Below, piece after piece: positions 1 to 62,874 of a DNA stretch of 64,000 nucleotides. The number at the start of each line of letters is the position of its first letter. Within the stretch, counting starts at the first letter, position 1. This DNA comes from Takakia lepidozioides. Its lineage: Eukaryota; Plantae; Bryophyta. The notes beneath the pieces are model-generated. The model did no database searches and was not told where the DNA came from. It saw only the letters and a program-made list of their open reading frames with translations. The stretch covers positions 85,498,001 through 85,562,000 of the forward strand of contig CM060731.1 in the NCBI GenBank assembly GCA_030704615.1. The letters run 5' to 3'. A program made the translations under genes and the position numbers.

Positions 1-3000
1 GGTACCGGAGGAGGGTGCTGCCGCTCAACGTTCGCAGCAAGACCTCACCACCGATGAGCAAGCAGGCCCGGAGGAGGCCTCTGCAATGGCAGAATTGCCC
101 GCAAACAGGCCCCAGAGTGCAGCTCCAGTTGAGGATGCTCCAGCTGCTCAGCCACTACCGGCACCTACAGACATGTCTCCGGAGGATTTCAAAAGTGCAG
201 CGGATAAAATGTTGGAGGAGACACACAGTAGCATTGGTAGAGTTCTGGGCAGCATGTATTCCAGCGGACTCTTCGAATCCCACTCTGTCGCATGGTCTCC
301 CTTCCCATCGTCAGGCAGGCCCTTCCCGGAGATGTGGATAAGCTGAAGTTCGCATTTCGAGAAGGGTATCGTCTGGGATCGGCAGCGTTTTACGTTTCCA
401 TTGAGAATGAGGACGGCGAAACTCGTGGACCCACTGCCGATGAATTGTGAATGTGGGATACCCACTGGCACACACGCAACGACGAATTCGAGGCGACGCT
501 GAAGGGTGATCCAGACTTCGGCCATATGTCGGGTAAAATGTTCTTTGTGTGGGACGGGAATCACCGACTTCTTGCCTGGTGGGAGTACATCAAGCAGAAC
601 CATGCCAAGCACATTGGCTGGCATTACATGGTGGAGTGTGTCATCCTGAAGGTGAAGGCGGCAGACTCCTCCCTGCTCAAGAATGCCATGGCGGACCTCA
701 ACTCGTAAGATACTCATACCCTCCCTAGCACGTTCGAAATGCGGTGCCGCATTTCGGTTTCCATTCTGGTTTGTTTCCGTGCTTCCGTGTACTGAATTGG
801 AGAGTGTGCCTTGCAGGGTCACTGAGAATGCGTACGTCCATACCCACATGGCACATATGTTGTACAGGGTGAGGAAAACTGGTCTCACTGATCCGCAGAT
901 GTTTGCGGAAATGCTGGAGCCCGAGCTCATTCAGAAAGCCGTTGCAAAAACAGACCGGACATGGTATCGTCTCACTATGGATGGAATGGTGGAGGTGATA
1001 TACGAAGTAAGTCATCCTCCAATTCCCTCTGCTCATCCTTCCCCAATTTCCAGTAATCTTTCCACATGAATCGAATGTAACGCTTCTGCATGTTTTTGTT
1101 GGCAGTCAAACATCAAGCTGGATTTGGCCCATGCCAAACGCTTCTTCATGGAAAGTGAGGGGCAGGTCAAAACATTGCAGTCATTGACTGAGCACTTGAA
1201 GGAAGCCGGTGTCAAGTCCAGAACCAAATACAAGTCAAAGCTTGTGAAGCTGGTGGCAATTGGAGATCCGACACTTGGAAAGGACTTCATCCCCGAGATT
1301 GCAAAACACTATTCTCGGGCCATGCAGCCGACCATGCAATTGGAGAAACTGCATCACCTCTCAACGGCATGTGTTGAGGCGAAAGAGAAGGTGAGGTTTC
1401 AATGCACTGAAGTTCCTTCCTAGCAATAGCCACTCTCTTCCAGCTCCTGACATTGGATCGGAAATGGCAGACACGGTGGCTGTCGATCTGGAATGCATCC
1501 GAGAGCATAAGGACAATGTGGTCTTTTCCACTCGAAGTTTCCGACCCTGCAATGGATGCTACGTGATAATGCATTTGGGAATCGCAGGTAATGTCGAATG
1601 CGAAGGAGCAAGTCGTAATGCACACAAATTCGTTCGGCTTGTACGTCAAATGGGATGGAACACAGACATTGGAAGACTACGTGACACGTTTCAGATGTGC
1701 GTACAAGGACAACCTCTTCGCCAGAGAGCTACAGACAGCAAGAAGGAGCGTGGAGTTTACACATCAGGAGGGAGCGGGGAAAGCTGCAATGCGAATTGTT
1801 TACAGGTGAAGCACAGCTACCCTTGTATGCGAAGCTTGGTTACGAGGTTTGTCTCGGAAATGCGGCACCGCATTCGCATTTTATGTTTTCGGTGGCACTC
1901 TGCAAGTAGGTTCGTCCAATCTTATGCTCACGCATGCTGACTGCCTTGCAGGTATATGAAATACGTGCTCCTTCAGACAGGGGCCCTGGCTCAAGAGCCC
2001 CCGTTCTTCATGGCTTGGACCGTGGCGGGCCCAAGCTGTGTCTACACAACCGAGATGCATAAACAATGGCATCCCGTGCATCTCGTTGGATGCCCCTGGT
2101 ACCTGGATATGTCTGGCGGTATTGTTGACGAGTTTGAGAAAGATCTGCACGCCTTGGCAGAAGAGAAGAGAAAGGAAAGACGTGTCCCTGCTGGGCCAAA
2201 GTCGGCAAAGGAATCTGCTACTCTGGAAGAATCCAGAAAGGCAGCTGAGATGGCACAAAAGACGGTGGATGCAGCTGTGCAGGCCCAACAGAAGGGGTCG
2301 AAGAAGAGGACTCGCCAGCAAGGAGCAACCGTTGTGACACCCGCCAAAACGAAGAAGCAAAAACAGCCTGTTCAGGAAGAGAGTGACGAAGAGGACTCCG
2401 ATGGAGACTTTGCAACCAGCCCACCCCCCCCAAACGCAGGCTGCCTCCCCTGTGCCCACCATTGTCACGAGAGGCACGAGAACTGGCTCGGCAAAGAAGG
2501 CACTCTTCAACCCCCCAGGGGGGCACCCTTTCGAGCCGGTGGAAATGAAGAGGCCGAAAGTGGCTCCCGAAACAGTAGTCCAGTGTGTAAATGAGAGTTT
2601 CTTGGCGGCTTTGGATGGAGGGCAGCCAAGTTGGCATACATGAAGACCATGGAGGGTCTGAAGGGCAGAGCACTGAAGAAGGCGACTGCCGAAGAGCCTT
2701 CCGACACCCCAAGATTTCAGAATATGGTCTCGTTCTTTGAGAGGGTGTGTGCAGACAAGGATTGTAGGAGGGGCGGAAATGCCACCGAGTGGTCTTGCGA
2801 TATGATCATCTTGGATATTCCGGACGGAGAGCCTGTGGAAGACTGCAAGCTTTGCCATCTTGGAACAGGTACTCGGAGGACTTTTGGAAGAAAGGATTCG
2901 GGCTTGCCCGCATGGTGTTGGACGACAGAGGCTGTGTGGTTGTCCTGGCGAGCAGAGGAAAAAACACTCAGACAGGAATTGCGAAGTGGACCCGCAAGAG

Positions 3001-4302
3001 CGCCGTCCCGATTCTGAAAAAGAAGTGGACGTGCATCAACACACTGGGCCTTCGGTCGGAAGGGAAGAAGGTAATTACGACACTGGCACTCGTCCATTCA
3101 TTTGCTTGGGTGTTTTCAAATGTGGTGCCGCATTCGGTTTCTAATCGTTCCCCCTGTGTATGCAGACGAAGCAGTTCGATGCATACTGCTTTGTGAAGGA
3201 GAACTCCACCTTTGCTTTCCGGAAGGAGGGAGGAAAGGTTGACCCGAACTGTGACCCCCTCGATTACGACGTTCTGTTCAACAACGTTCCCAAGGAACTT
3301 CTCCCTCATAGCCTCACTTCAATGGAACCCCTGCGGTACTCACGGACTCGGAGCCCTGCCTTCATTCAGACAATTATGGAGACATGCACAGACATGGAGG
3401 GCACAGTGCTGGACCTCATCTGTGGGACAGGTATGCAGAATCTTGATCTAAGTTGTTCTGCAAATTCTCGTTAGGATGTAGTTCGCAACATCTGAAGCGC
3501 CATGTTGTAATGTGTGGATGGCATTGTAACAGGTGCCTCAATGTGGGCTGGGCGGTTTTCCGACCGGCACCTCTTTGCCTACGAGGAGGACTCATCCGTG
3601 TGGGAATCCCATCTGGAAGGGCTGCAACGGAATGTTAAGGCTCCCAACAGAGCGGAAGTCTCCTCGGATTCGTCGGAGTCCGAGGAAGACACAGTGGACA
3701 TTGATGCGGAGGAGAACCCGGAATACGAGTGAGTGCAAACATTGTAAGTTTGCAAAGCCTTCTGGGTCATTTTTGTCAAACAAATTTCCGGACTGTGGTT
3801 CTCATTAGTCTCGTTGATGATTGTCATGTGCAGGATTGCAGGGTCCGGGTCGAAACATGTAGGGCCTACACTTCCTGCCAGGAAGAATGTCCCGTTCTTT
3901 GCGAGGGCCGACTTCATGACGAGCCCGGTGAGGGACTACTCCCTTCCTAGTTATGCAGCTAAACTCGCAAATACAGCGATTAGAAGAAGTGAGAATCCCA
4001 GTAAAGTAGAGCAAATTTTGGAGAGGGCTAGGGAGGACAGAAGGATAAGGAAAGAGTTGGCAGCAGCTCAGACAGGTAGACGGGTACGAAAGTACATATG
4101 TGATTCAGCGGATGAGAGCGACGCAGACAGGGAGGAAGACGACCCAACGGAGGTGAGATGGACAGTTCCGCAAGGGGAAGATGGGATTTTCGAAAGCCTG
4201 GCCAACGAGCAGTCCGCTGGAGATGAGAAAGGCAATGAGGGGGTGGAGGCGGAGCAGGACAGTCTAGAACAGGATGAGGATTCGGATGATTTTCAAGATT
4301 AA
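1..4302 (+). pseudogene. Spliced gene encoding a ParB/Sulfiredoxin-like domain, an unknown helical region, a charged linker and a beta-class N4C/N6A DNA methyltransferase. Degenerate copy with several stops and frameshifts; the 5' end may lie outside the window.
   Basis: Phase-consistent GT-AG exons: <=704, 817-1006, 1106-1390, 1471-1805, 1952-3070, 3166-3430, 3533-3728, 3834-4302. Exon 1 reads LRIPLCRMVSLPIVRQALPGDVDKLK...FFVWDGNHRLLAW (GxxRxxA). The C-terminal part reads SCDMIILDIPDG (motif IV-like), then WNRYSEDFWKKGFGLARMVLDDRGCVVV, then RSPAFIQTIMETCTDMEGTVLDLICGTG|ASMWAGRFSDRHLFAYEED (motifs X, I, II). In-frame stops at 448 and about 1564-1569, and frameshifts in exons 1 and 5. Confidence 0.8.
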
Positions 4303-4436
4303 TAGAATTTTAATGAAGTCTCTGTAAATGTAAATTCTCTTCCAGAGTATATAAAGGAAATCCCCGACATTCGTGACCCCTCTCCAGTGTGCATTCCAGC
4401 CACACAATCGCCCAAACCACGACGCTCCCAAAATCA

Positions 4437-5205
4437 GAAATGGGGCACCGCATTTCCAAAATTTTGGCAACTCTAAAAACCTCTTTTGGAAATGCGGCAC
4501 CGCATTTCCAAAACAGGGGAGGGACTAAATTTTCCATTTCATGGTTGGCATAGTAAAAAGTAATCGGCCGATTGGAAATGCGGTGCCGCATTTCCAAAAT
4601 TTCCTTTGTCCACACGCCAGTTTTGGCCTCTCCCGCTCATTGCATGGATGCCACCACGCTTACAGAGGTCGAACAAGGAGGTCGAACAAGGAGGTCAAGA
4701 TGGCGGAATTGGAAATGCGGTGCCGCATTTCCATATTGGGGATGGTCGTTGTTCGAACTGCAGGCCCATCAGCAAAAATTGGCACCGCATTCCATTGTAA
4801 AAAAAAAGTCGATGACGGACATGGAAATGCGGCGCCGCATTTCCAGAACGGACATCGCAATTTGTTCATTTGCAGACCCTCTCACGGAAATGCCGTAACG
4901 CATTCCATCGCGCTGGTCGGAAATGTCACACTTTTCGAAGTGTTGGACGGAAATGCGGCACCGCATTCCCTTGTCCAAAAAGAAGTTTCCATTGCCAAGC
5001 TGGAAATGCGTCGCTGCATTTGCAATGCCAACCTCGTTGTCTGTCCAATTTATAGACCCGTGTTGGTATTTCATGTACATGGACGGAAATGATGCACCGC
5101 ATTCCATTGTCCGACACTGAAATGCGGTTCATACATTTCCATGTCGGCATTGAAATGGGGCACCGCATTACAATGTCCGACATGGAAATGCGGTGCCGCA
5201 TTTCA
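4437..5205. repeat. Array of about 14 palindromes GGAAATGCGG-(TG/CA/CG)-CCGCATTTCC with variable spacers
   Basis: Copies at about 4437, 4488, 4574, 4711, 4776, 4823 (perfect 22-mer), 4886, 4919, 4949, 5002, 5085, 5119, 5152 and 5184. The last four have a period of about 33 bp. Confidence 0.95.
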
Positions 5206-5461
5206 ATGTCCGACATGGCGTTACTCTAGTATATTCTTGACACATGACTCTCATACCGGTTACTCTGGTATATTCATCCGGACAGACAAATTGTAGAAAT
5301 GAGACATCAAATTGTAAACAGTGGGCCAATTCCGACAGTTATTCAACAGAATGAAACACAATCACACAGAAGTGAGGTACGATGGGTTTATTGATCGGAC
5401 ACGATGTCTCACATTTACCAACTGCAGACAAAACTAAGCCCTTCCTCCTTCTACATGGGCT

Positions 5462-6041
5462 TCACCAAGTCGACGGAACTTCGATACCCCTCAAAACAAG
5501 CTCATTACTGCTGCGGCACCTCGAGGTAAACTGCAATTCGGTCGTTCTACTGCCCTTGCTGGAGCTGACGACAATGTCATGTCCATCAATGATACCACCA
5601 TCATACATTGACAAGGTCACTGTGGGCCTCATGTGCCCGTGCGATTCGTCTTCGCAACTCAGCCGAATGTCTCCATACACTGGAAGAGCGGAGTGATCTC
5701 CACGTATATAGTTTTCCCCGGTGCCGTCCTCCCTGGTCCACTGGCAGCAGTTCCAGCGCCAAAGCGAGGCCGTGCGTGATCTGTCCGGCATCCCTTTCCA
5801 TCTTGGTATATCGAGGTCAACAATTTTTCAGGACCCACGGACCGCATTGACCCTCGCCCTCACCTCGCTCAAAGCGGTAATAGCCCTCCAAATACTCCAT
5901 TGCGTGCAAAGACTCTTGCTTGATTCCAGCAGCGTCTGTGAAAACAGAGAGCCAGACAATGATGTCCCCTGATTCTGGTTTGAACATAGCATAATCGTGG
6001 CCATGATAAGGGCAGTCGGCTGGAGTTCGGTGGCACGGCAT
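5462..6041 (-). pseudogene. Orphan protein of about 190 aa, paralog of 6573-7136, frameshifted
   Basis: ORFs 5817-6041 and 5462-5791 together align with the plus-strand ORF (DCPY.G.DYAM, GDI..W, FERG, RWNCCQWT, YGDIR, LS.YDGG.I.G.DIVV, ELVLR..EVP). Confidence 0.8.
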
Positions 6042-6572
6042 CCTTGAAAACTACTGGAGTACTGGAGTACGCTCAATGACAGCAGCTTCCGGATGGAGGA
6101 GGAGCAGCGCGGTGGCTGGAAAAAGTTCAAGCTAACGCTGCAATTCCTCACAAACCTCCAGGGCACATTTAAATTCCCCCCTACAGGATCCTGGACGGAT
6201 GAAGATTGGCTGCTCCATGAACGTAGCCGTTTCAGTTTCCTACCCTGCCATGCAAACTATGGGCAATGACTGCTAGGTGGGCCGATAGCCACTCGACACG
6301 ACAAAGTCCATCCCCCCTTCGATGTAAATGCGGCGCCGAATTTCCATCCGGGGATGGACTTCGGTGGCATATCTCAACCTATACCCCGTGGATGAGAAAG
6401 AGGTATGGGCGTCATACCTCCGTCGGTGGGTGCGTAGGACCCAGATGCTCCATTATTTGAGCCCGGACTGCTCTTCCGCTTCGCATCATTTCCAAAATCT
6501 AAGGGCTTCGTTGCTGTCCGCAAGGTCATTGTCATCGGCATCAAAGACGTCCTCAGGTCCTCCTTTGCAAGG

Positions 6573-7136
6573 ATGCCGTGCTTCCGGAACCGGGATGACT
6601 GCCCTTATGGAGGCATCGATTATGCAATGTATTCGGCCACATCGGGAGACATCGTTATCTGGTACACAGATTACACAGAAGATACTGGTTCAAATGTGGA
6701 AACATTGTCCGCTTTTGAGTATCTCCCAGGCCAGTACGCCTTCGAGCGGGGTGACGATCTTGGTCTGAGGAGTCCGTGGCTCCTGCGCATCCTTGATTCC
6801 AATTTTCCCAGCTACGACGGGCACCCATGCAGAAGAATGCGCACTGCTATGCTGTTGCGGTGGAACTGCTGCCAGTGGACGTGGGTGGACTCCATCGGAG
6901 AGACTTATACTCCTGAAGGAGTGCGCTCATCTTCTCCATTGTATGGGGACATTCGCATTGGTGTGGAGGACGAAAACGTGAAGCTTTCCATATACGATGG
7001 TGGTATGATTGAAGGGCAGGACATTGTGGTGAACATCAACAGGGGCGGTACAACGGCTGCAATCGACTTTACCTGGAGAAGCCCGAAGACTCATGAGCTA
7101 GTTCTGAGAGTAGTCGAAGTCCCATTGACAACGTGA
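6573..7136 (+). CDS. Intact 187-aa hypothetical protein of unrecognised family
   Basis: Uninterrupted ORF. Full-length protein similarity to the divergent minus-strand copy, with the same start context (CAAGG-ATG-CCG-TGC). Confidence 0.7.
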   Translation: MPCFRNRDDCPYGGIDYAMYSATSGDIVIWYTDYTEDTGSNVETLSAFEYLPGQYAFERGDDLGLRSPWLLRILDSNFPSYDGHPCRRMRTAMLLRWNCCQWTWVDSIGETYTPEGVRSSSPLYGDIRIGVEDENVKLSIYDGGMIEGQDIVVNINRGGTTAAIDFTWRSPKTHELVLRVVEVPLTT

Positions 7137-7599
7137 CTTTCAGTGGCACAGGGCTAACGATTTCTTTGCACAATCAGCACAGTAGACGTGCTTCAAATTC
7201 AATTCATGTGGATCAATAAAAACCTCATTGTGCCCTCTCTTTATTCTATTCTGTGTCCATCGTTCCCAGAATGCGTCATTGCTCATTTCGTTTGGGATTG
7301 GGAGTGTGGGAGGATTTTGCAAGTGGCTGTTAGGCTGAAATGGGCCCCCATTGTACAGAGCAGTACCACCCTACCATTCGCGAAACATTGCCATTCAATA
7401 TATAATTCTAAAAAACATTGCCGAACCTCCTTCATCGGGAGGTCCTTCTCCCCCTATGACCGTGGCACCCTTAACCCTATTCCCGCGGACACATATTTCC
7501 GGAAAATAGTCTGCTCATGTTTTTTTTCACACTTACGACTCTGCTCATGGCTCATGCCGCTCATGGCTCATGGCTCATGAAATAGCAGCCCCCGGCTTA

Positions 7600-8020
7600 T
7601 GGCAGACAGAAGGCGACCTTTGATGGAGTGTGCTTTAATTGCGGGGAGCTCGGGAACATGGCCAAGAAGTGCACAAAACCCCCACAATTGTACATGACTC
7701 GGGCGGCCACAGAGCTGTCCGAAGATTCCATTAGCCGCTTGGTGGAGGCGGTGGTCACCAAGACTTGCAAGGTAGGCAACTACTCTTGTGAGTTGTATCA
7801 GGAAACTAGCGCCTTGTGTAAAGGGAGTCAGTTAATGTTTGTGAGTGGGATAATCTCCGGAACTAACGTGTCGTTGTTGGTGGACACAGGAGCGTCGCAC
7901 TCCTTCATGACACCAGCAACGGCACGAAAGCTAGGGCTCCCGACAAGTGATGCGGGGGCCTCCATTGAAGTGCGCTCTGCTAAAGGAGAACCACAATTGG
8001 CAACGAGGTTGGAGCAAGTC
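7600..8020 (+). mobile_element. Ty3/gypsy gag-protease fragment
   Basis: Zinc-knuckle remnant CFNCGELGNMAKKC and aspartic protease motif LLVDTGASHSFM. Confidence 0.8.
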
Positions 8021-8081
8021 CGGAGCGGTCATAAATGGCCGCAAAAGAGTAGTCACGCTACCGTGTGGGAATGGTAGCGAA

Positions 8082-11000
8082 GTGTTACTGTTAGAGGGCT
8101 GTCTGGGACTTAGACACTTTTACGGGTTCTGTGGGGTACCCTTAATTTTTGCACAGACTTACGAATGGTACACTTGGACCAGCATAGGCCTTAGGGGTAG
8201 TAGACAGGCTTACACAGTCAGTCACAACATTACATAGTTAAACACAGCTTGACACAGCTTGTCACAGTCTGACACAGCCTTACATAGCCTATCACAGTCT
8301 ATCACATCCCGACATAGCCCGACACAGCTTCGCACAGTTTCACATAGCCAGTCACAGCCCGGCACAGTTTGGCACAGCCTGTCACAACGTACATAGGGAA
8401 TGGTTATTATTCGTAGGGAACGACTGTGTGGGAACGACATCTGCAGAGGGAACGTGCTTACTTTTTGGATGACAGTTAGTTAGTTAGGCGGTTAGAACAG
8501 CTTGCAGATAAATTGGGCAGAGCAACAACATGGAGGACACTTCTCGGGGAGCACTTCTTGGTCATCACGAGAGGAGATCAGTGGAGAGCACGACTGGAGC
8601 AGGAAAGGAGAACATGGTGAAGGAGGAGTGACGATCTGTTGATGCTGTTACATGCAAGCTGTAGAGATATACTGTAGGGTAGACTAGGGACACCATGGCT
8701 TCGGCCGGATACTGATAGATCTTAATTTGATACACATTCCATACTCACACTGTGTAGAGAGATTTGAGTGAAGTTGTGGAATGAATGGATGAGTGATTGG
8801 AACCTGGTAGTTTGCTGAAGCAATCTGATGCTTGAATATAAACAATAAGGTAATTTGCTGCCATGAAGGCAAGAAGGAATACAAACATGAATCACTTCCA
8901 TGATACACTAGTTGTAGGTCAGACTGATTGTTCTGAGCGGGCTGAGTGCTTGGAGATATCCAACTCTTCTATCTTGGAGTTCCCACCTTGGATAGCGAAG
9001 GGATGGGTGAGTAAAAGCCGCTCGACATTTGGCGACCATACTGGGGAACTGGGTCAAGAACAACCAGATGTGACAGGCATCTGGTGGGATGATGGTGGTT
9101 GGAGAATCAAAGAATTTCTTGTGAATCAAATTCCATGTGGAACTAAGAAGGAAAGATTGTCCAAGCAATTCTTTCAGAGATTCTTGGAATTGCCAGACGG
9201 TTGCAAGGAAAACATTCTTAAGAGAGTGCATGATGCTGATCCGCAGTGGGGTCTGGAGAAAGGAGTGATAAAGATTTATCAAGTGGCCTGTGGAGGGAGA
9301 GCAAGTTGGTTACCAACACTGGTTTTTATGTGATAGCGTTGCTATCCATTAAACGAGTGGAGTTTGAAGGCTGGGAGGAACGGAAAGTGAATGTTTACAC
9401 TCATATGCATGAAGAATTGGTACTGGTAAAGAATTGGATTCCTAAGGATATCCTGTGGATCAAACTTACACCAAGAACAACTTTTCAGATGTGCTTGCCA
9501 TATGGTTATATGGTAACAGAGACTGCTAGTATAGCCAAGGGTGCATTGAAGTTTGAAAGAAATCCAGGCATGTACGAGAGATACTACAGAAGAGAGTTTT
9601 GGTTATTGCCTCATTAAATATATGAAAAGACATGGGACATGAGTGATGAAAGAGAAGCTAGACTCCACAGATATTCAGCGAAAAGAGAAAGTTATTTAAG
9701 GGCTAATTATCCATATCTTTGGGAGAGAGGAATAGACATAGGGGAATCATCTGGACCTCTCACACCATTAAGATCATAGAGTACATCACCCATACCGGAG
9801 GAACCAGAGTTGGATGCCACTCCTTCTTATTCTTTACAAGAAAGATTAAGGGATTTGGTACAGGAAGAAGATCAGCCACGAGGGGAGAGATCTGAGGTAC
9901 ATCCCTGGATAAAAGATTTGACAGAAATCTTTGATCAGAGTTGGCATGGGACACCAAAAGCAGGAACTCCAGTTTCTGAATCACAAGACTAAGAAGGAGA
10001 GGAGGATGTGGCAGAGCCAACAGAGAGTTCAGACTCTCCAACACCACTCCAGTTGAGTTATATGAGAGAGGAAGAGGAAAACCAGGAGAAGAACTTGGAA
10101 GATGAAAACATGAAGAAGAATTTGGAAGATGAAGAGTATAAAGAAGTAGATCCAATAGCTGAGGTTGAGACTACAACCAGGACATCCCAACCTGTTGGAC
10201 CTGGATCAAGTGGAGCATTTGGATCACAGGCCAACGAAGGTGTCGGCTCGGGGGGATTAGGCAGGCAGCTTGGATCTGGCTCTGGGGGGACAGGGAGTGT
10301 GGGAAGTAGTGCAACTGGGGCTGGGAATACTTTGAGTACAGAGGGGCCAGAAGCAGGGAGTGCTCAGGGGCCAACACCTGGTGGGAGACCCACCACTACA
10401 ACAGTAGGTCTTCTAGGACCAGCATCAACAGGAGGACCAGCACCTGTCAGTGGGCAGGGTGTAGGGCCACAGATGGCGGTACCTCCAACACGGGCAAAAC
10501 CACCTTTTCCAATATATGCAGGAAAAGGGGATCCTGATGTACACATCAGCCAATTTGAGCACATGTGTATTGTGAACAATGAGAATGGCGATGATGCCAA
10601 GATGAGACTGTTTCCTTGTTAACTTGTCAAGAAAGCAAGTGAATGGTATGCAAGATTCCCTGATAATCATTTCCTAACCTGGAATGGCCTTAGTACAGCA
10701 TTCCGAAATAGGTTCAGGACAAGCAAAACTGAGGATGAAGTGTATGGGAGTTTACAACAGTTAAAGCAAAAGAAGCATGAAACTGTTGAAGAGTACATGG
10801 AAAAGATGGAGTTGATGATGAAAAAGCTGGCTGTTGTGCCAGCACCAGGGTTACAGAAGACCTGGTTTGTGAGTGGATTAAGATCTAAATTACAAAAGAA
10901 AGTGGATATGCTACCCCATAATACAGTGGAGGAGGCATTTGAAACAACCAACAGAATTGAGCAATTGGGAATGCTCAGAAGAGAGAAAAGGGATGATGAG

Positions 11001-14184: not shown

Positions 14185-15740
14185 AACAGATTCTCTACCT
14201 CAAACCCACCACCTAGCCAGCTCACGCCAACTAGGCAAGACTTTGCTACAGAAGTTTGCTAGCTCGTGGACCGCTATCTGATCGATTACCCCCACCCCCC
14301 CACCCCCCCCAAAAAAAAAAACCTCGCTTGCTCCTCAAGCTAACACAAACCCAGTCTCATACTACCCTCCCACCGGACATCCTAGCACTTCTTATAGACT
14401 CTTTCCAAATCACGCACTCTTATTACTCAGGCCCACTTACATGCCCTATGACACTCTCATCATACTCAAGCTCGCACCCCCGCGACTGCATATTTGGAGC
14501 CATTGGCTTTGCCTCCCAACATACCTGGACTGGCCGCGGCTTTGCACACCCGCCCCAAGGATCTCCCACGCATGACGCGTTACAATGGGCTCGCCTTGCG
14601 GCCCAATCCTCCCCCTCTGCTGCCACCATCCTGCTTCTGACATACCAACAACTGCCAATGACCCGCACCCCCTCCTCCAGCTTCCCCCCGAGGTTACGCC
14701 CTTAGCCGCAATTGACGTTTGGGGAGGGGGGATAGGGAATGTGGTGGCCTTCATGCCATGTGTATCTATTAAAAGGTGTTTGAGGCGGGATGGGAAGTCG
14801 GCGGGTATAAGGGTGTCTGCAGTGGTGCGGTGGACAAGCAGTATGAGGGTTAGGGTGGGTTCTCGATGTTTAAGGTATTTGGGGGGGGGGGCGATAATAT
14901 TGGATCTGTTCTGCCCCTCGCCTCTATCCTAACATAAACAGCTCTAAAACATGGTCTCGTATGTCAGCCGTCCACCAGTCCCCCCTATCATACCTGTCCA
15001 CACCAAACCCCCGTTATCCCAGAAGGATCTTCCTCTCAGATACCCACCAATACATGGGCCACCAACATAAACACATCTTCTGGCCCCGCCTCTTTCCCTC
15101 CCCAAACTGTCCACTCTGTGCTAGCACCCACTCGACCCCCGACACTTGGCCCCACCTACTCAGCCAATGCACACACCCCGTCATCCATGGCCTTCGTATC
15201 ACTCGACATAACCATGTTGTCTGGCACATCCATAAGCTACTCCTACGCCGCCCTAAAACACGCTGGTTTTCACTCATCAATACCGGGACCTACCAGGGCA
15301 GGCTTCCTGACCACACGGTACCCCAATGGCTCCTGCCATGTACATGCCGGCAACCCTCACTCTGCACTTGCCCCGCCAGACTCTGTCCAGACATACTTCT
15401 AATCCACGGACTACCCATAAACGCACCACCGCCCAGCTCCCCATCCCCAAACCTTACCATACACTTTATTGAATTCACATATTGTAATGATCGCTACCCC
15501 GGCTTTTCCACAAAAAACACCAAAAATACGCTCCACTCATTCTAGCCATTCGTCACCGTGGGTGGTCTACAGGCCCCTCATGGTCATTACTGCCGGTACC
15601 AGAGGCGGCATCCACAATGCTAGTATTTATGCTCTTCATAATAACCTCAAAATACCTATCTCTCCTATACACAAATGCATCAAAGCTATCCACCTGACTG
15701 CGTTGCACCCCCTCAGTGCTATTATCACCAACAAGAAGGA
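14185..15740 (+). mobile_element. Rearranged fragment of an RLE-type (RandI/Dualen-like) non-LTR retrotransposon
   Basis: CPLC...DTWPHLLSQC...RHNHVV, PDILL...FIEFTY (restriction-like endonuclease). Upstream PCIF1-like MTase segment at 14370-14640. Same family as 28055-30914 and 62023-62760. Confidence 0.8.
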
Positions 15741-25029: not shown

Positions 25030-26705
25030 CACTGGAACTGGCGGTCGCTCCATTTTCCGGATAAATAAAAAAACTGCGACCGCCAGAACTGGTGGTCGCT
25101 CCATTTTCCGGAAAAAAAAAAAAATAAGCGACCGCCAGAACTGGCGGTCGTTCCATTTTCCGAAAAATAAAATAAATAAGCGACCGCCAACATAGGCGGT
25201 CGCTACATCTACGGAGACATTAAGAATTGAAGCGACCGCCAGTAATGGCGGCCGCTTGATTTTCAAAACAATTAAAATAAAAGCGACTGCCAGTCATGGC
25301 GGTCGCTCCATTTCCAACAAAATTTTAATAAAAGCGACCGCCAGTAGTGGCGGTCGCTGGATTTACAAAAAAAAAAACAATTGCGGCGACCGCCCGTTAT
25401 GGCGGTCGCTCGATTTTCCTCCAAAAATTAGAGAAGCGACCGCCTGTAATGGCGGTCGCTTCATTTTCAATTTAAAAAAAATAAAAGTGACTGCCAGTAA
25501 TGGCGGTCGCTTCATTTTTATTTTCAGAACAATTAAAATAAAAGCGACCGCCACAAATGGCGGTCGCTCCATTTCCAACCAAATTTAAATAAAAGCGACC
25601 GCCACTAATGGCGGTCGCAGCAATTACAAAAAACAACAATAGCGGCGACCGCCCCTAATGGCGGTCGCTCGATTTTCCTCCAAAAAATAAAAAAGCGACC
25701 GCCAGTAACGACGGTTGCTTCATTTCCAAAATAAGTAAAATAAAAGCGACCGCCAGTAATGGCGGTCGCTTCATTTCCAAAATAATTAAAATAAAAGCCC
25801 GCCAGTAATGGCGGTCGCTTTATTTCCAAAATAAATAAAATAAAAGCGACCGCCATGTATACCCCCCCCCCCCCCCCCCCCCCCCATTCCTCGCTCCACG
25901 CTCATGACAGACCTCGTAGAAGCGACCGCCACCTTCGCGGTCGCTCCATTTAAAAAAAAAAAACGACCGTCAGTAATGGCGGTCGCTCTATTTCCAAAAA
26001 TAAAAAAATAAAAGCGACCGCCAGTAATGGCGGTCGTTGATTTTTAAAAAATAACAATTACAGCGACCGCCACAAATGGCGGTCGCTACATTTTGTAAAA
26101 ACAAAAACTGCTAGTAATGGAAGTGAGGGGAGAATGACTGGGAGCTTATATGCCCCCCCCCCCCCGCCCTATTCCTCGTTCCACGCGCAGGGCAGACCTC
26201 GTAGAAGCAACCGCCACCTTGGCAGTCGCTCCATTTAAAAACAAAAAAAAGGGACCGCCACAAATGGCGGTCCCTCCATTTCGCAAAAAAAAAGAAACAA
26301 AGCGACGAGCAGTAATGGCGGTCGCTGCATTTATAAAAACAAAAAAAAACTTCAAGCGACCGCCTGTAATGGAAGTGAGGGGAGAATGAGTCCGAGCTTA
26401 TATGCCCCCCTCCCCCGCCTCACTCCTCGCTCCATGCGCAGGGCACACTTCGTAGAAGCGACCGCCACCTTGGCGGTCGCTCCATTTAAAAATCCCAAAA
26501 AAACGACTGCAAAACATGGCGGTCGATCCATTTTCCAAAATTAAAAAAACAACCGACCGCCACTATTGGATTTTCAGAAAAAATAGAAATTAAAGCGACC
26601 ACCAGTAATTTTACGAAGAAACAAAAGCCGATCGCTATTACATCGCGTTCACTGTATTTACAAAGAATAAAAAACAAATGCGACCGCCAGTGATGCCGCT
26701 CGCTG
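25030..26705. repeat. Array of about 30 palindromes AGCGACCGCCA-NNNN-TGGCGGTCGCT separated by A/T tracts, period about 51 bp
   Basis: Copies start at 25128, 25180, 25232, 25283, 25334, 25386, 25436, 25487, 25544, 25595, 25645, 25695, 25746, 25797 and onward. Confidence 0.95.
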
Positions 26706-28054: not shown

Positions 28055-30914
28055 TTATGGTGTGGGCTGACATATTATGTGGTTATTTCCATGGGGCATG
28101 TAAGGGGGCTGGAACAATATGAGTGTGTGAGCTGGAATGAGTTGATGAGTAGTGTGAGAATGTCTTGGGGAAGGGTGTTGTGGGTACATGCCTGTGCTAG
28201 CCAGTTCGGGGAGCGTGGCTTTTTCGAGGGGGAGGGGGGGGGGGGGGGGTCCTTGAGATATCTTTGAATTAGCCAGTTGATTTCGGTGGCAAAGTCTTGT
28301 TTGGGAGGTTGTAGGGATGGTATGTGGCTCGGTGCGTTGGAATATTTTTCCCATAGCCATTGCAAGCGGTTATTCGGGATTAAGCCTATGAATATGCCAT
28401 ATTTAGCATAGATATTAGAGAAGCGTGGGCCCATGTACATCATGGGGGAATCGTGGTTAATGTCTTTGTCAGGGTTGTAGTCAGTGATGTTGATATGGAG
28501 GTTGGGGGCTTGGATTGGGTTTTGTACGTGGGTGAGGAAGTTGTTGTTGGTAAGTTTGTGGAAGTTGGTCAGGAGGGTGAGGTTATGTGCTGGGTCACAG
28601 TTTAGACCATTGTATTTGAGGGCAAGGAATTTGAGGAGTCCCTGGTAGATTGTACCTAAGCGGTCAGGGTCGTTGAGGGCTTCTTTTATTTGTGTGCCGA
28701 ATGTGCGGGCATAGGAGATGATTAAAGGGCTGGATCCGATACCGTAGCAGTCGGTAGGGAGTTGGGTGAGGGCATTGGGGCACAAGTGGGTAGGCCGCAT
28801 ATACGTTTTGTGAGCTGGACAATATTCTTATCAATTTTCTTGATATTAGGGAGGGAGAAGGGTGCAGCATGGAAGGAGTATTGGATTTGGGTTTTGAGTA
28901 CAGTTGTATACTGGTACCGCCACCCAACACACATGGTCCGGCAAAGGCCTAAGGCCTTGCTCACCCCCCACTAGGGCCTGCGACACACGAAGCCTTCCAA
29001 TGGGCGCGCCTAGCTGCCAAGGCTTCCCCTACCGCCCTCACCATACTTATTCTCACCCAACAAAACTCGCCCGATGACTCCCACCCCCTCCTACGTCTCC
29101 CCACTGGTATTCATCTAATAGCAACCATCGAGCCAAATCAACTTAAATACACACACACACACCCCCTCTCCCCAAATACCTCCAGCAGAAGGAATCATCT
29201 CTAACTCTCATCTTACTAATACAAAACCCCATCTCAGCCCACGTCTCCCCTCCTTTCCTCTAAGATCTCCACAAACTACTCATACGCGTACACAAAATAA
29301 AAGCGGGCATCGCCCCCCGCCCCCCCACACAAACAGCCCACCCCAAACTACGACACCACCCCGGCCCCTTTTCGAAATATTAAACCCAATAAGGCATGGC
29401 TACAGGCCCCCACACACCCACCACACACCGCCCACGCCGTATCCCCACCCATCATCCCTCAAATTTACCAACAACAAAAATCTCTCAGATTCCCCCTCAT
29501 CCACTCCCATTACACAGACGGTTTCGTCATGAACTCGAGCGCCGGCTATGGGGTATTCCATGCGGCCACCCAACAAGGGCTTGCCCTCCGCCTACCTGGT
29601 CCCGCCACAATCCTACGAGCAAAACTCATGGCTATCTACAAAGCCATATCAAGACTAGATGCCCCCCCCCCCCCCCCCCCCCTTATTATATTTTCACTGA
29701 CAGTCTCACCTCACTCTTCCTTCTCCGTAACCATCTTGCGCGTCCATCATCCCATCACCACCACCCAGACCGCAACCTTATCGCCGCCATTATCCAACTA
29801 GCTCTCTCTAAATCCCAACCTATCCACATCTATAAACTTCGCTCGCTGCCGCCTCAATCAGCCACACTAAAGTCCATATACAAAAATGGACACAATCCTC
29901 CATACTCCACCATAAACTCTCAAATCACTTCTGGAACACCAAAATCAACACAGATGCACAAATTTGACAAACACTCAAATTAAGATACGCTCAGTACATG
30001 GGCCACCAGCGTAAACACATTTTCTGGCCACGTCTCTTCCCGTCCCCATACTGCCCCCTGTGTTCCAACACTCACCAAGAACGAGACACCTGGCCACACC
30101 TACGTAGCCAATGCACACACCCCATTATACATGGCCTACATATCACCCGCCACAACCAAGCAGTCTGGCACATCCACAAATTACTCCTTAGTCGTGCCGA
30201 AACCAGATGGTACACACTTCTCAATGCCGACACATACCAAGGCCGCCCACTTGATCACACGGTCCCACCCTGGCTACTCCCATGCATATGCACCTCTCAA
30301 ACATGCACCTGCCTCGCCAAACTATGCCCGGACATCCTATTGGTGCAAGGCTTACACACAACGGCCTCACCTCCTACCACACCCTCCACATCACTTACTA
30401 TCCACTTCATCGAATTCACATACTTCCATGACCGCTATCCACAAGACGCTATATTAGACAAAGGACAAAAATATGCCCCACTCATCCTAGCTATCCGCCG
30501 CCAAGGATGGCGTACTGGTCCCCTCACTGTCATCACGGCAGGCACCAGAGGTGGCATCCACAATGCCAGCATTAAAGACCTGCACAAAAAATTTCATATT
30601 CCAATCTCTCCGATCCACAAATGCTTTCAAGCTATTCACCTCACAACTCTTCGCTCTCTCACTGCCATTATCACCAATAAAAGAAAACTTGAATCCAACT
30701 CCACCACATTACCCTAGGCACCCGGGGTGCCCCCCAGGGAGGGGTAACCCCCTCCCTGTTACCATTAACCCACCCATGCACACACACCTCTGGTTACTAG
30801 GTGCCCAACCGGGCACCAGTTTTATCATAGGGCCCACCCCGACAGGGGGTGCCCAGTAGCCGTGAGGCAAAGTGGCTCTTAGTTACGCCGGCTTCGGCCG
30901 GAGTCTTCTCTCTA
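28055..30914 (+). mobile_element. RandI/Dualen-like non-LTR retrotransposon 3' portion with an inverted 5' segment (28055-28912 on the minus strand)
   Basis: RT-thumb-like region and MTase N-half on the minus strand. Plus strand carries the MTase C-half, RNase H (YTDG...AGYGV...ILRAKLMAI...IFTDSLTSL), the CCHC/RH/PD..E endonuclease ORF 29998-30717 and a 3' UTR ending GAGTCTTCTCTCT. Confidence 0.85.
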
Positions 30915-34735: not shown

Positions 34736-35229
34736 CCACCTACTCAACCAGACTCAACAAATCCCCCAGGTTGCGCTCTTTTGCGAGACCTTATCCAGTC
34801 TACACGACGAACAGGCTGCAACCGACTCCAGACTGATGAGATTGAACGGTACGCACTGTTGGAGGCTTTGAAGGTCAGTAGTAAGGAGTTAGGTAATGTG
34901 ATCTGCTGTAGCTGTGAGCTGCTTGATCAAGTGTGGGTTGCATCCACGCCCACGAAACTTTCTAGTCTCGTCTCGTCTCATAGTACGTACGAAGTGTAGG
35001 AGGTTTTGGACGTGCGTCTCGTGGTGCAATGGCCAAGTTCAGCTTCACTGCAGTGAGATGAATGCAAACATGATCTGGTGAACCACCTTCTTTGATCAGA
35101 AGAAGTGCTCCATCTGCATCCCTTGATTGACATCGGCCACGAGGGGTCTGGGGAGTGGACCTGTAGTACTTGAATAGTGGGTATTTGGTAGCTCGACTAG
35201 TAGGACTGAGGACAGGTCTGCAGAGCCAC

Positions 35230-38200
35230 ATGGAGAGGGGGTATGGGGACGGGGGAACCGCACAAGTGGCCATAGAGTTGGGCATCGAATTCAGCGGGCC
35301 AGGGGGCAGCAGAGTGCCCACGCCCATACAATGGCAGCTCAAGGATGCCGCAGGGGAAGATTCTCTCGCAGACGTCATGGGGCACACAATGCTGGAAGTA
35401 ATGGTGGATGTGAGCCAGGATTCAGTCTCCTTACGTAGTGTGATACCGACTCTCAAGGACCCGGGAGGCCGAATGCTGAACGATGACTGGGAACTCAGCG
35501 CTTACGATGCTAGTTTCATGGCAGATGGACGGTTCAAGAAGAACAGCAGCTCTTTTAGTGCATCCCTCAAGCGCTCTGCCTCACGAATTGTACAGTTCTC
35601 ACAGGAATTGGCACGATCACTGCCACGCAGTGCTTCCTGCGTGCTGTCTAGTGGATTGAACTGGGACCCTGATAAAGACCCTCTAGTAGGCATGACCAGT
35701 ACCAGCGGTGCCCCTTTTCGTCGGCAGCAAAGTTTGCGCCTTAGAAGAACAATATCAGGAGCTGAGAATGCATTGGAGGGACTGCGCTTTATAAGCAAAG
35801 CCACGTCCACGGCGGACCTGAAGAGCCTCTGGAAGGCTGTCGAAGGTCGATTTCATGAGTTGGCAGCAGCTGACTCGAATCTGCTTTCACGCTCCAATTT
35901 TGGAGAATGCATAGGTCAGTTATCCCTTGAATGAATCTGTGTGTGGGTCCGTTTTACGTATATGCAGACAAACATGCAGCTCCCTTTTGTATGTGAGGTC
36001 ATGGGGGCTCGCTCCAAACACGAGAGGCATTCTCTAGATAAAAAGTATGTAACTTAGGGTAGAGAGAGTACTAAGCATCCAGGGAGTCACTGACCACATT
36101 CACGGTCACCTGGGGATCTCATGGCGGGTGAGAAGTGGATGGGTCAAATGATATTGTGTCATGGCACTGTCCACGCAGGAATGAAGGACTCTAAAGAGTT
36201 TGCAAATGGGCTCTTTGATGCTCTCGTCCGAAGGAAACTTGGTCACACAGTGGAAAGCATCTCCAAAGACGATCTCCATGAGTTCTGGCTGCAGATTACT
36301 GACAATAGATTCGATTCACGCATGCAGATCTTCTTTGAGCTGTAAGTGTCTCTTGAGAGCTTCATATGGGGCACATATATGTATCTGCCATGATGCAGCA
36401 AATCGCAGGGTAGTGTGGATCCGATCACTTACAGGCGTGGAGGTGCTTTGATTACAAATGCAGGTGTGACAAAGATGCGGATGGTCGCATCTCCGGGGAA
36501 GAAGTGAAAGAGGTGAGATGCTCAAGCTCAAGTCACACTTGATACTTCAGCTTCAATTCCAATATTACTAGTACCTCAAATCAGAGATCTGCCAATTGAT
36601 GCAATACTCTTCAACGGGACCTTTACCGGTCGGGAAATCCCGGACGTCTCGAGAAAATTTTCTTCAATGTTCAATAAATATTAACAAGTCAGGTTTCTAA
36701 AGTTCTACCCTGCATATCTAGTACAGGTCATCATGCTGAGTGCATCGGCCAACAAACTTTCGACATTGAAAGAGCAGGCGGCAGAGTATGCAGCACTTAT
36801 TATGGAAGAACTTGATGTCGATGGTGTGGGGTACATTGAGGTGATTGCTTCTGTCCACTTTAGAATATATAACTGCAGCTCCACGGGTGGCTCTGTGTGC
36901 GTTGCTTACATTCTAAGAATAGATTCTGGAAACAATCTCGTCAGGGAATGCTTACTAATACTGGGCACTGCCATTGTTTCCAGCTATCGCAATTGGAAAC
37001 TCTGATGCGAGGATCGGCCGTAGGATTGGGAAGGGATGCTGTCTTGCTTTACAGCCAGACTCTGGTCCCCCAAAAAAACCAAAACCGAATTGACAGATTT
37101 GTGGAGAAAAGTAAAAGCGCTTTCAAGGATAACTGGAAACGAATTTGGATCATTTGCCTGTGGCTAGTAGGCTTGGCAGCGCTTTTCGTCTGGAAATTCA
37201 TGCAATACCGCAACAGAGCAGCGTTCCATGCGATGGGATACTGCTTGTGTACGGCTAAAGGTGCTGCGGAGACCCTGAAGCTCAACATGGCCCTGATTCT
37301 TCTGCCTGTCTGTCGAAATACAATCACGTGGCTTCGCTCAACCAGGCTCGGATCATTCTTCCCGTTTGATGATAACATCAGTTTCCATAAGGCACGTCAC
37401 GGTCCAAGCGCATTTCCACCATTCGTACTGTTCAAATTGTATCAGAGAATGTCAAGCTTCTATATGCTAGAAAAAACTACCCTTCTCACTGCTCTGAAGT
37501 CTTTAATATCGTTTAATAACTACACAATCGCACTGTCGCAAAGAATCTGGATCAGTGTGCGGTCTCATTGGTGACGAATCTTGGATGGCGTTACATTGGA
37601 TGTGCAGGTCATTGCAGGAGGGATTGCAGTGGGAGTTCTTCTGCACGGGGGTTTGCATATAGTTTGTGATTTTCCGTTGATGGTCGACCTCCCCTACGAC
37701 GAGTTTGACAGGACGATAGGAGATGACTTCAATTATATGCAGCCGTCTTACGCAGATATAGTGAAGACACCCGCAGTGATGACAGGTCTCTTCATGGTGG
37801 TCCTGATGTCCATTGCGTTCACATTTGCCACTCCCTGGTTTCGACGAGGCCTCGTCAAGCTGCCAGGGACTTTACAAAAACTGACTGGCTTCAACGTATT
37901 TTGGTACACGCACCACCTGTTTGTGATAGTATACGTGCTACTCATAGTCCACTCCACCTACCTCATCCTCGAGCATAGTTGGATACAGAAAACCGTAAGT
38001 GACACTTGGCCGACTCAAGTGTGCTTTTTGGAACTGTGCATAATTTCTTGTAATCTACCCGGAACTTTCTAGTATCAATATTGACTCTTCGATCTTGTGC
38101 AACCAACAAATGTTAAGTAAACTGCGACAAGTTTCTTTCAGAGAGGATCTTGCTCTTGCCTGTTTAGCATAATACTAACACAAAAGAGCACATTCACGCC

Positions 38201-50649: not shown

Positions 50650-52526
50650 AAATGCTGGAATTTATTTATTTATTTTTTAAATCCAGAAAAATACCTCCCG
50701 TATGGGAAATCATGTGGGGAATCCAAAGATGCCATTGGCGCTTAGAAATGCCCTCGGGAACCCTGTGGGAACCCAGTGAGAACCGAGGAACGCCCGGGAA
50801 CCGTTCCCTGCTGCGAGGAACTGCTGCGGCCCTATTTGATGAATGAATCTCGCTGAGAATCCATCCCTTCCACGACATTCGTTAGTCCAGAACATGCATG
50901 CGTAAATAATAAAATAAACACTGGTGGGTCCAAGCCAGATTTCACCCCTTTACATTATTTTAAGGCGCTGGTGCGCTTTCCCTCCGTGGAAAAGTCATCC
51001 CCTACCTTGGGCTCTGACACAATGGCTCATTGTAGCCGAGTTTTTAGGACAGAGTACTTTCTCTCCTCCCTTGTCTCTCGAGGTCTCCGCCTCTAGCTCA
51101 CAGCTCACAGATCCGCTCGGCTCTCTCTTGGAGTCATACGAACGCTCCCCTCCAAGGCTACGTCCTCCCAAAATCCTAGATTTGATCTACCTCTGGCGCC
51201 TTAGATAATGGCTCCTAACCCTTAGCTGAATGGAAGAATGTATTGAGGAAAGAGCAATACGACGAATGCATCAAGAAAGCAGGAAAGACTTGGTATAACC
51301 TGACAGTCCGCAATGACAGAGATTTTGTACAAGGTAACATCATGTCTAAACCAAGTTTCATTCTTTGCATCCATAGACAAGATTCACCTCTGGTTCATGT
51401 TATGAACTATTTTGGTTCTTTTGGCAGCATGATATTGTTGAGGCCCAACGCATGGCGGGGGAAGCTTACAAACTTGTTGAGGGGCCAAAGAGTCAGGAGG
51501 GCCTTGAAGATACAATGAGACAGGTTGGATTGAAAACAAGGGAGCAACACAAGAGTCAGCTTGTGAAGTTGCTTCCTATTGCTGATCCGACCCTTGAAGA
51601 GGGGTTTCTCCAAGAACTTAAACTGCATTGGTCATGTGTAAAGGCATGATCAGAGGAAATGACCCAAGAGAAAATGGTGAACATTGCTACAGCCCGGGTG
51701 GATCCAGAAGAAAGGGTGGAATGGCTACATATATGGAATGGAGACCAAACACTTCACGACCGTAATTTTTTTTCCACCCGGGCCTATCAGTGGACCAACA
51801 CTTGATCCTTGGCTGAATAGAAGGACTTTTTGGTGGCAGGTACATATACAATCACTATCTTCTCAATGCAGTTGATTCATTTTATTGATGACACATTAAC
51901 ACAGTTATTTAACTGACTGTATTTTCTGGCAGTTTCGCAAGGTTGCCTTGGCATGCTGGAAAATAAAAGAAATTAAGAAAATCCAGAAAAATACCTTCCC
52001 TATGGGAAATCATGTGGGGAATCCCAAAGATGCCATTGGCGCTTAGAAATGCCCTCGGGAACCCCGTGAGAACCCAGTGAGAACCGAGGAACGCCCGGGA
52101 ACCGTTCCCTGCTGCGGGGAACTGCCGCGGCCCTATCGGATGAATGAATCTCGCTGAGAATCCATCCCTGCCACTACATTCGTTAGTCCAGAACATGCAT
52201 GCGTAAATAATAAAATAAACACTGGTGGGTCCAAGCCAGATCTCACCCATTTACATTATTTTAAGGCGCTGGTGCGTTTTCCCTCCGTGGAAAAAGTCAT
52301 CCCCTACCTTGGGCTCTGACACAATGGCCCACTATAGCCGAGTTTTTAGGACAGAGTACTTTCTCTCCTCCCTCGTCTCTCGAGGTCTCTGCCTCTAGCT
52401 CACAGCTCATAGATCCGCTTGGCTCTCTCTTGGAGTCATAAGAACGCTCCCCTCCAAGGCTACGTCCTCCCAAAATCCTAGATTTGATCTACCTCTGGCG
52501 CCTTAGATAATGGCTCATAACCCTTA
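50650..52526. repeat. Pair of direct repeats of about 575 bp (50650-51225 and 51953-52526)
   Basis: Near-identical text from AATCCAGAAAAATACC to GCGCCTTAGATAATGGCTC.TAACCCTTAG. Confidence 0.95.
51228..51760 (+). pseudogene. Fragment of a diverged paralog of the ParB-MTase gene
   Basis: CIKKAGKTWYNLT vs AVAKTDRTWYRLT; HKSQLVKLLPIADPTLEEGFLQEL vs YKSKLVKLVAIGDPTLGKDFIPEI; EKMVNIATARVDPEERVEWLHIWN vs EKLHHLSTACVEAKEKTRWLSIWN. Intron 51334-51427. Confidence 0.85.
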
Positions 52527-61150: not shown

Positions 61151-62874
61151 TCAATCTATGAAGCAAGACGTTTGTTTTGTTTTGTTTTGTTTTGTCACGT
61201 TGAGATGTCCCGAACCGCAAGGCCCCAGCCCTGGTGCTTGGTCCCGTTGGAAAGCCCTCGAGGAGGAGGGGTGCACGGGCTTGGTCTCAGGATTTTTGGA
61301 CCAGCGGTGTGGGAGATGTCGAATTCCAAGTTATATATGAAGCGACCACCATATTGGTGGTCGCTTAGTTTTTAAAAATAAAACAAAGAAGCGACCGCCG
61401 ATTTGGGGTCGCTTAATTTCTTAAAATAAAAAAGTAACGACTGCCAATTTGGTGGTTGCTTCATTTTCAAAAAAAAAAAACAGCGACCGCCAATTAGGCG
61501 GTTGCTTCATTTCAAAATCGACAGTCAATTTTCCGGTGGCTTAATTGTTTTAAGAGAAAAAAGCAGTGACCGCCAATTTGGTGGTTGCTTTATTTTATTT
61601 TTTCTTTAAATTTCAAGCGATCGCCAGTTTTAAAATTAAAAAAATCAGCGACCGCCAGTTTGGCGGTCACTTAATTCTTTTAATTCAGAAAAACCAGCGA
61701 CCGCCAATTTGGCAGTCGTTTTTTTATTTAAAAAATTAAAGAAAACCAGCAACCGACAGTTTGGCGGTCTTTAAAAAAAAATCCCCCTTAAAAAATACGA
61801 TTAATAAATAAATAAAAGTTGCGATCGCCAATTTTGCGGTCGCTTATAGTTTTTATTTTTAAAAATCTTGGAATGGTTTTCTTAATATGAAGCGACCTCC
61901 ATATTGGCGGTCGCTTAATTTCTTAAAATAAGAAAAAAATGAGCGACAGCCAATTTGCGGTCGCGTCTGTTCTTTTAAAATAAAAACAATCAACAACTGC
62001 CAATCTGGCGGTTGCTTCATTTTTAGAGAGAGAAGACTCAGGCCGAAGCCGGCGTAACTAAGAGCCACTTTGCCTTGCGGCTACTGCACCCTGTCGGGGG
62101 TGGCCCTATATAAAAGACAGGTGACCGGTTGGTCACCTAGTAACCAGGGTATGTATGTTGTGGTGCTAGAAAGGAGAATGAGGGGTACCATCAAGGGGGG
62201 GTACCCCCTGGGGGGGTGCCTTAGGGTTCCTAGGGTAACGATGTTTGGATTGGACTCGAGTTTTTGTTTATTGGTGATAATAGTTGTGAGAGAACGGAGG
62301 GCTGTGAAGTGGATAGCTTGAAAACATTTGTGAATTGGGGAGATAAGGATGTGAAAGTTGTTGTGCAGGTCATTAATGCTGGCGTTGTGTATGCCGTACC
62401 TGCCGTGATGACGGTTAGAGGACCGGTGGGCCATCCTCGCCGGCGGATAGCAAGGATGAGTGGGGCGTATTTTTACCGTTTTTCCATGATAGAGTCTTGT
62501 GGATATCGGTCGTGACAGTATGTGAACTCGATGAAGTGGATAGTGAGTGATGGGGATGGTGTGGTAGGAGGTAGGGTAGCCATGCGTAGAACCTGCACTA
62601 GTAAAATATCTGGGCAGAGTCTAGCTGGACAGGTGCATGTTCGAGAGGTATAAGTGCATGGAAGCAGCCATGGTGGGACAGTGTGATCGGGTGGGCGACC
62701 TTGGTATGTGCCTGCATTTAGGAGTGTGTATCATCTAGTTTCGGCGCGGGTGAGGAGTAGTGCTTCATTTAAAAAAAATAAAAAATAGATGCGACTGCCC
62801 ATTTGGCGGTCGCTTCATTTCTTTACAAAAGAAAAACAAACGGCGGCCGCTTCGTGGATAGGCGCTTCTACTTG
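61151..62874 (+). mobile_element. Non-autonomous Helitron-like element carrying the GCGACCGCC palindrome array (61341-62020 and about 62790)
   Basis: A^TC start followed by a (GTTTT)n microsatellite; 3' GC-rich hairpin-like segment then CTTG^T (variant of CTRR^T); internal palindromes like those at 25 kb. Confidence 0.45.
62023..62760 (-). mobile_element. 5'-truncated copy of the RLE non-LTR retrotransposon
   Basis: RLE domain and 3' UTR match 30200-30914. 10-bp TSD TGCTTCATTT at 62013-62022 and 62761-62770. Confidence 0.9.

Follow-up and report, generated by a model that had tools for sequence, protein, structure and literature searches.

What is a gene that joins a ParB-type domain to a methyltransferase-like half, amid copies of one palindrome, doing in a plant nucleus? 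The question is raised by the left end of a 64,000-nucleotide stretch of the Takakia lepidozioides genome (assembly GCA_030704615.1, contig CM060731.1, positions 85,498,001 to 85,562,000 of the forward strand; hereafter the window, numbered from its first nucleotide), where an initial annotation had inferred in the first 7 kb a mobile module whose ParB-methyltransferase protein binds or marks its own palindromes. This 7-kb block does belong to one mobile unit, but it does not stand alone as an autonomous module. On the evidence of its right end, it forms the right-hand half of a Mutator-like DNA transposon, decayed and present in many copies, which begins left of the window and ends at 7593. 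Our preferred reading of the accessory protein, to which we give a probability of roughly 55%, is that it would bind the palindromes and so let the element recognise its own copies, either to counter silencing or for regulation, in a family-specific and VANC-like manner.

Alignment with related loci gave the following right end:

7520–7593, no strand: right-hand end of the transposon, in which the heptamer GCTCATG is repeated; from alignment with the end common to loci L037, L045 and L046, and from the contig junction
7594–7602, forward strand: predicted 9-bp target-site duplication, expected from the 9-bp duplication of L037; it is the start of an interrupted Gypsy-like gag-protease fragment

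L037, L045 and L046 (related loci carry L numbers throughout) are three copies of one family, whose sequences diverge from an identical base at the right end, and window positions 7520–7593 align with that end, heptamer repeats and final bases included. The left end of L037 is an imperfect inverted copy of its right end (terminal inverted repeats), and its ends are flanked by a 9-bp duplication (359–367 and 14556–14564) unique to that place, which delimits a 14.2-kb element. In the window, the junction at 7585–7593 is visible in sequencing contigs, and a Gypsy-like fragment coding for a gag zinc knuckle and protease (7594–8080) is broken by the transposon at 7593. From the end homology and this junction, the block is the right-hand portion of a Mutator-like element that had inserted into the gag fragment. 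The same gag fragment is apparently also cut by another long terminal repeat (LTR) element near 8020. Variant contigs from the same organism, in tens of thousands, fall on all 30 bins of 2000–7950 and run unbroken across the gene, the palindrome array and the orphan genes as far as 7593, which indicates that these form one repeated family; contig depth was not taken as copy number. Among the transitions that separate the window copy from its family, 17 of the 20 displayed lie at CG or CHG sites, against 39% expected (p 3e-5), which, read from the substitutions, is how plant DNA decays under methylation of the 5-methylcytosine (5mC) type.

A DDE transposase of Mutator-like element type is absent from the window, and we infer that the transposase of this element lies left of the window start. 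In seven related loci (L036, L037, L038, L042, L045, L046 and L047) a transposase-like gene is found upstream of the ParB-type gene, in divergent orientation. Read by eye, it has a DDE-like core, a CxxH motif and a SWIM-like end; its Pfam match is to SWIM alone (E 0.73). L040 has at 5913–8761, just downstream of its ParB-methylase-like gene, a different transposase-like open reading frame (ORF) lacking a Pfam match; it is accompanied by an array of 12 palindromes of CG-N2-CG type and is probably a neighbouring element. Pieces of a second methyltransferase-like gene near the first element in L045 (17840–19056) and L047 (202–387) suggest clustered or nested copies.

The accessory gene was modelled from GT-AG boundaries and exon-by-exon similarity to relatives, and homology searches were made with this spliced model exon by exon:

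86–4302, forward strand: ParB-fold/amino-methyltransferase-like accessory gene, 8 exons, about 1,160 codons; the true start may lie left of 86
86–704, 817–1006, 1106–1390, 1471–1805, 1952–3070, 3166–3430, 3533–3728 and 3834–4302, forward strand: its exons
271–704, forward strand: ParB/Srx-type nucleotide-binding domain with the DGNHR box; from 39–49% identity to 19 relatives and the model of an intact relative
2781–3645, forward strand: beta-class amino-methyltransferase-like domain, with motif IV DIPD (about 2808–2819), motif X-I in exon 6 and motif II in exon 7; from alignments and weak matches

The window copy has a frameshift near 256–271 and stops at 448–450 and 1564–1569; indels at 2424, 2619 and 2840 distinguish it from other copies of the family. 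Judged by these lesions it is a pseudogene, so that the ParB-methyltransferase gene claimed initially is broken here; the ParB fold stands on an intact relative, and the methyltransferase-like exons give weak matches that are mostly to amino-methyltransferases. None of the sequencing records that carry the sequence is registered as RNA; one run (X8) may be RNA. In the relatives the ratio of nonsynonymous to synonymous substitution (dN/dS) is about 0.1 for both domains, which indicates purifying selection. At 50680–52525, a pair of LTR-like repeats in direct orientation, each about 550 bp long, surrounds some 750 bp with a decayed, intron-bearing fragment resembling exon 3 of the accessory gene (41% identity, E 6e-9), which looks like the capture of a gene fragment by a small retroelement.

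The palindromes are distributed as follows:

735–756, no strand: palindrome in intron 1
1856–1877, no strand: palindrome in intron 4
3116–3137, no strand: palindrome in intron 5, degenerate (6 of 22 positions off, 1 off in the 16-bp core)
4436–5205, no strand: palindrome array, core CG-N4-CG; 11 copies have ≤4 mismatches and 2 (4773, 5118) are degenerate

As initially described, the 22-bp palindrome is confined to the block: 11 matches at ≤3 mismatches were found in the 64 kb, all within 735–6345 (0 in 100 shuffles), and there is no copy with ≤5 mismatches beyond 6345. Its presence in three introns also held, since all three intragenic copies lie in introns of the 8-exon model (chance about 0.003), while the array downstream of the gene is real but has 11–13 copies rather than about 14. 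Array spacings are 33, 50, 52, 53, 62, 63, 83, 86 and 137 bp and tend to integral turns of the helix (mean cosine 0.74 for a 10.5-bp turn, p about 1e-4); they arose partly by duplication, which limits their independence. The window's own palindrome sequence is found in none of the related loci. Palindromes centred on CG-N4-CG are nevertheless present in at least 2 copies in 8 of the 13 loci (about seven families), which places this spacing at the top of 176 dinucleotide-spacer combinations, the other spacers reaching at most 2 loci; the arms differ between families around this fixed core. That palindromes accompany the gene in other organisms and vary by family is supported. In AT-rich decayed relatives (L007, L010, L011, L021) a palindrome with TACTTT arms and a TG-N4-CA centre recurs, one copy of which keeps CG-N4-CG (L010, 7094); from its sequence, the TG-N4-CA form may be a deaminated site. 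TG-N4-CA forms in these loci are not enriched over other spacers (21 vs 12–26), one recurring family being visible by eye.

In the relatives the ends are free of palindromes, which occupy introns, the interval that separates transposase and ParB gene, or the sequence downstream; that of L036 also occurs inside its gene span. The palindromes are internal to the element, at least 1.2 kb from the end, and the end has its own heptamer motif, which is conserved across families whose palindromes differ. The element therefore has two separate repeat systems, one a heptamer conserved in the ends and the other an internal palindrome particular to each family, and this favours the accessory protein as the reader of the palindromes. 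It could be argued that the palindromes are internal sites of the element's own transposase, bound by a zinc-type DNA-binding domain for synapsis or self-activation, and that the ParB-like gene does something else. We regard this as possible but rather unlikely. The window half-site ATGCGG resembles the GCM-domain motif, which counts for a role of the transposase, but half-sites in other families are unlike that motif, and a GCM-like identity of the N-terminus of the relatives' transposase, an impression gained by eye, found no confirmation when checked. The same transposase clade does accompany the gene in seven loci, and transposases can be sequence-specific activators of their own copies (10.64898/2026.08.24.746577). 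This reading leaves unaccounted for, however, that the ends hold a different heptamer, conserved across families with differing palindromes, and that the arrays lie beside or inside the ParB gene, as they do with the red algal PAG3 under another transposase superfamily. Binding of the palindromes by the accessory protein remains the reading that we prefer.

What kind of protein is this? Searches of Pfam, PHROGs and NCBIfam gave no significant match for any piece of the window or for the ParB domain, and a PDB profile search with the ParB alignment gave no match; because these searches failed, the fold assignment rests on a predicted structure. Exon 1 has 19 relatives reached via L001 and 35 loci in metagenome contigs, with a DGNHR box, of the GxxR type, that is nearly invariant. 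The predicted structure of an intact relative (P0012; predicted local distance difference test score, pLDDT, 87) superposes on Caulobacter ParB (7bm8) with a Z score of 9.2 and a root-mean-square deviation of 1.9 over 94 residues. Its matches to ParB, Noc and KorB (Z 8–9.2, deviation about 2) come ahead of those to sulfiredoxins, and all 31 matches listed for it are in, or resemble, the ParB/Srx superfamily; Foldseek E-values for the model of the ParB domain alone are above 0.001 and not significant. On this model the N-terminus of the protein is confirmed as a ParB-fold nucleotide-binding domain in the intact relative. The protein resembles bacterial ParB with parS, Noc and KorB in this fold (Z 8–9) and in the company of a palindromic site of 16–22 bp present in several copies. 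It differs from them by the lack of ParA, by a DGNHR rather than a GERR box, by its methyltransferase-like C-terminal half and by being encoded in a spliced nuclear gene, and the fold is known for the nucleotide-binding domain alone. Searches for prokaryotic or viral proteins close to the ParB domain gave none. The single viral match (L041) was rejected, since it amounts to 11 residues within a structural-like phage protein that the search pattern had selected. Since the nearest folds are the ParB, Noc and KorB CTPases and not sulfiredoxin, the domain could act as a cytidine triphosphate (CTP)-gated clamp or bridge that compacts a 15-kb element, pairs its ends or holds an excised form, with no epigenetic role. 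The occurrence of such genes on unusually large transposons and the phased arrays, which fit cooperative assembly, speak for such a role. We consider it quite improbable, however: no ParA-like ATPase was seen in the window block or among the genes of L036–L047, no sign of a circular form was seen, and the conserved methyltransferase-like half would stay unexplained.

The C-terminal exons show the beta-class order, motif IV, target-recognition domain, motifs X-I, then motif II, and keep the S-adenosylmethionine (SAM)-binding motifs. Their matches are weak (E 0.006–1.6), with amino-methyltransferases in 5 of 6 PDB rows; the motif X-I exon matches DpnA, CcrM and RsrI weakly, and phage DNA methylases also weakly, and PF01555 is reached at E 0.006 in a relative of this domain. 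The motif IV exon matched no solved methyltransferase. Canonical amino-methyltransferases use an aromatic residue of motif IV. The family thus resembles DpnA, CcrM, RsrI and Marchantia DN4MT1 in having motif IV before X-I-II and in the weak match of the SAM-binding exon, but differs in motif IV itself: (D/N/S)PP(Y/F/W), which is TSPPY in DN4MT1, occurs neither in the window nor in intact-looking relatives. It is replaced by DIPD in the window and by DIPE, DVPE or DLPE in relatives (D-[IVL]-P-[ED] throughout those read, never aromatic). With another residue in place of the catalytic aromatic one in all relatives read, methylation by this protein appears doubtful, and so does the N4-cytosine or N6-adenine (N4C/N6A) marking proposed initially. 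An active enzyme of this kind might mark its own palindromes, for instance at the C of CG-N4-CG, to block 5mC or to flag self. The beta-class motif order with its SAM-binding motifs, a motif IV exon under strong purifying selection, the plausibility of a CG-containing interrupted palindrome as a target and the existence of N4C enzymes in eukaryotes (Marchantia, 10.1101/2021.02.12.428880) are consistent with it. The motif IV of every intact-looking relative and the lack of a solved match for its exon nevertheless make it unlikely in our view.

We therefore favour a model in which the end heptamers are the likely sites of the transposase and the internal CG-N4-CG palindromes, with their family-specific arms, those of the accessory protein. 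In intact copies the protein would dimerise via the nucleotide-binding ParB domain, recognise palindromes both in the arrays and within introns, and so coat the copies of its own family. This coating would shield them from host CG/CHG silencing or tune their transcription, as VANC does for VANDAL elements. With a methyltransferase fold that has SAM-binding motifs and lacks the catalytic aromatic residue, binding or reading of the CG core seems likelier than its methylation. Several observations weigh against this model. The same transposase clade is present in nearly all loci with enough flank, so that effects of the gene cannot be separated from those of the transposase. In the accessory protein a DNA-binding domain was not found, the part shown being the nucleotide-binding ParB domain. 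There is no array in the available sequence of L001 and L047, and L040 and L042 have single copies; helical phasing is not significant in the L040 array and borderline in that of L038. Finally, the 5mC-type decay, as read in the window copy, implies that any protection did not last. A bolder version, which we hold tentatively and think rather unlikely, is that of a land-plant transposon lineage with a CTP-gated ParB sliding clamp in the nucleus, which would load at family-specific CG-N4-CG palindromes, spread over the entire element and mark or shield it against silencing by the host via the altered methyltransferase fold; the palindromes would then be a parS-like code for recognition, the arms being re-coded in each family.

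VANC-like anti-silencing has a proven precedent in the VANDAL Mutator elements of Arabidopsis (PMC5735166). As in the window family, the accessory gene is Mutator-borne and, from a comparison of layouts, family-specific motifs are multiplied in non-coding parts of its own element; the function of VANC is proven whereas that of the window gene would follow from such parallels. The VANC protein itself has a different architecture and is not known to have a ParB or a methyltransferase fold. A closer likeness is found in algae. In Ectocarpus, Sola1-1_Ec32 carries a gene for a 1,104-amino-acid ParB-like/N4-N6 DNA methylase opposite the transposase, and the suggestion made there is that its product binds the element that encodes it and modifies it (PMC12477816, where earlier green algal cases are cited). 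Both cases have a ParB and amino-methyltransferase fusion of about 1,100 amino acids, encoded on a giant DNA transposon in the orientation opposite to its transposase, and the same proposed self-binding role; by description, architecture and layout in L036–L038 and L045–L047 fit that account. The window element differs in being Mutator-like and from a land plant, with defined CG-N4-CG palindromes and a non-canonical motif IV. The Plavaka elements of Bostrychia (PAG3/PAG2) and Mutator elements of Chondrus also have a ParB-like accessory gene by inverted-repeat arrays, and for Plavaka, where the gene adjoins the arrays, binding of these was proposed by analogy with ParB/parS; there, however, ParB is fused to a 2-oxoglutarate (2OG) oxygenase, the methylase is a separate gene, the transposase is of EnSpm type and the hosts are red algae (10.1101/2025.02.11.637652). 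For algal transposons, accessory genes of the ParB-methylase kind, along with the proposal that their products bind the repeats of their own element, were thus already published in 2025, and calling the locus a new system was too strong (PMC12477816; 10.1101/2025.02.11.637652). No paper on a land-plant form was found in the literature searched, which does not cover most subscription journals. The land-plant family makes the algal hypothesis, that ParB-type proteins bind or mark their own transposons, directly testable, as it offers defined ends, relatives that look intact and are under selection, and a candidate site whose CG-N4-CG core is fixed while its arms vary by family. If the hypothesis is true, self-protection of the VANC kind would have been reached independently a second time, possibly by means of a ParB clamp that works on eukaryotic chromatin and has natural variants in specificity.

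Between the array and the right end lies a pair of orphan genes:

5462–6041, reverse strand: orphan gene A, of some 190 codons; the window copy has a frameshift near 5824, where other copies have an indel
6304–6361, no strand: axis of the inverted duplication, with palindrome 6324–6345 between perfect 12-bp inverted arms (6304–6315, 6350–6361)
6573–7136, forward strand: orphan gene B, open over 187 codons; the frame is open from 6438

The initial description of one palindrome between two divergent paralogues was correct: the copy at 6324–6345 is present, and A and B share 64% DNA identity over 589 bp and 51–53% in protein. Their dN/dS of about 0.47 indicates that they were probably coding. Around the axis, faint similarity extends across the spacer, and we propose that the pair arose by inverted duplication about one palindrome. 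Its inclusion in the system did not hold, as it occurs in none of the related loci: it is cargo of the window family, inside its ends and outside the conserved gene-plus-palindrome unit. That the palindrome at the axis may place both genes under the control of the palindrome-binding protein is a guess from its position. The orphans have no homologue among 5.8 billion proteins (in a length-limited search) or 1.84 billion representatives, atlas scores are at most 0.82, and a structure model did not fold (pLDDT 34).

Elsewhere in the window, arrays of another palindrome (GCGACCGCCA arms, about 50 bp spacing, in A-rich DNA, not of the CG-N4-CG type) at 25039–26372 and 61339–61769 are probably subterminal repeats of another DNA transposon. 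ORF fragments resembling non-LTR retrotransposons are present in several copies (14961–15545, 28075–30717), and exons at 35170–37574, in keeping with a land-plant host and read by eye from ORF translations, resemble a plant respiratory burst oxidase (RBOH) gene.

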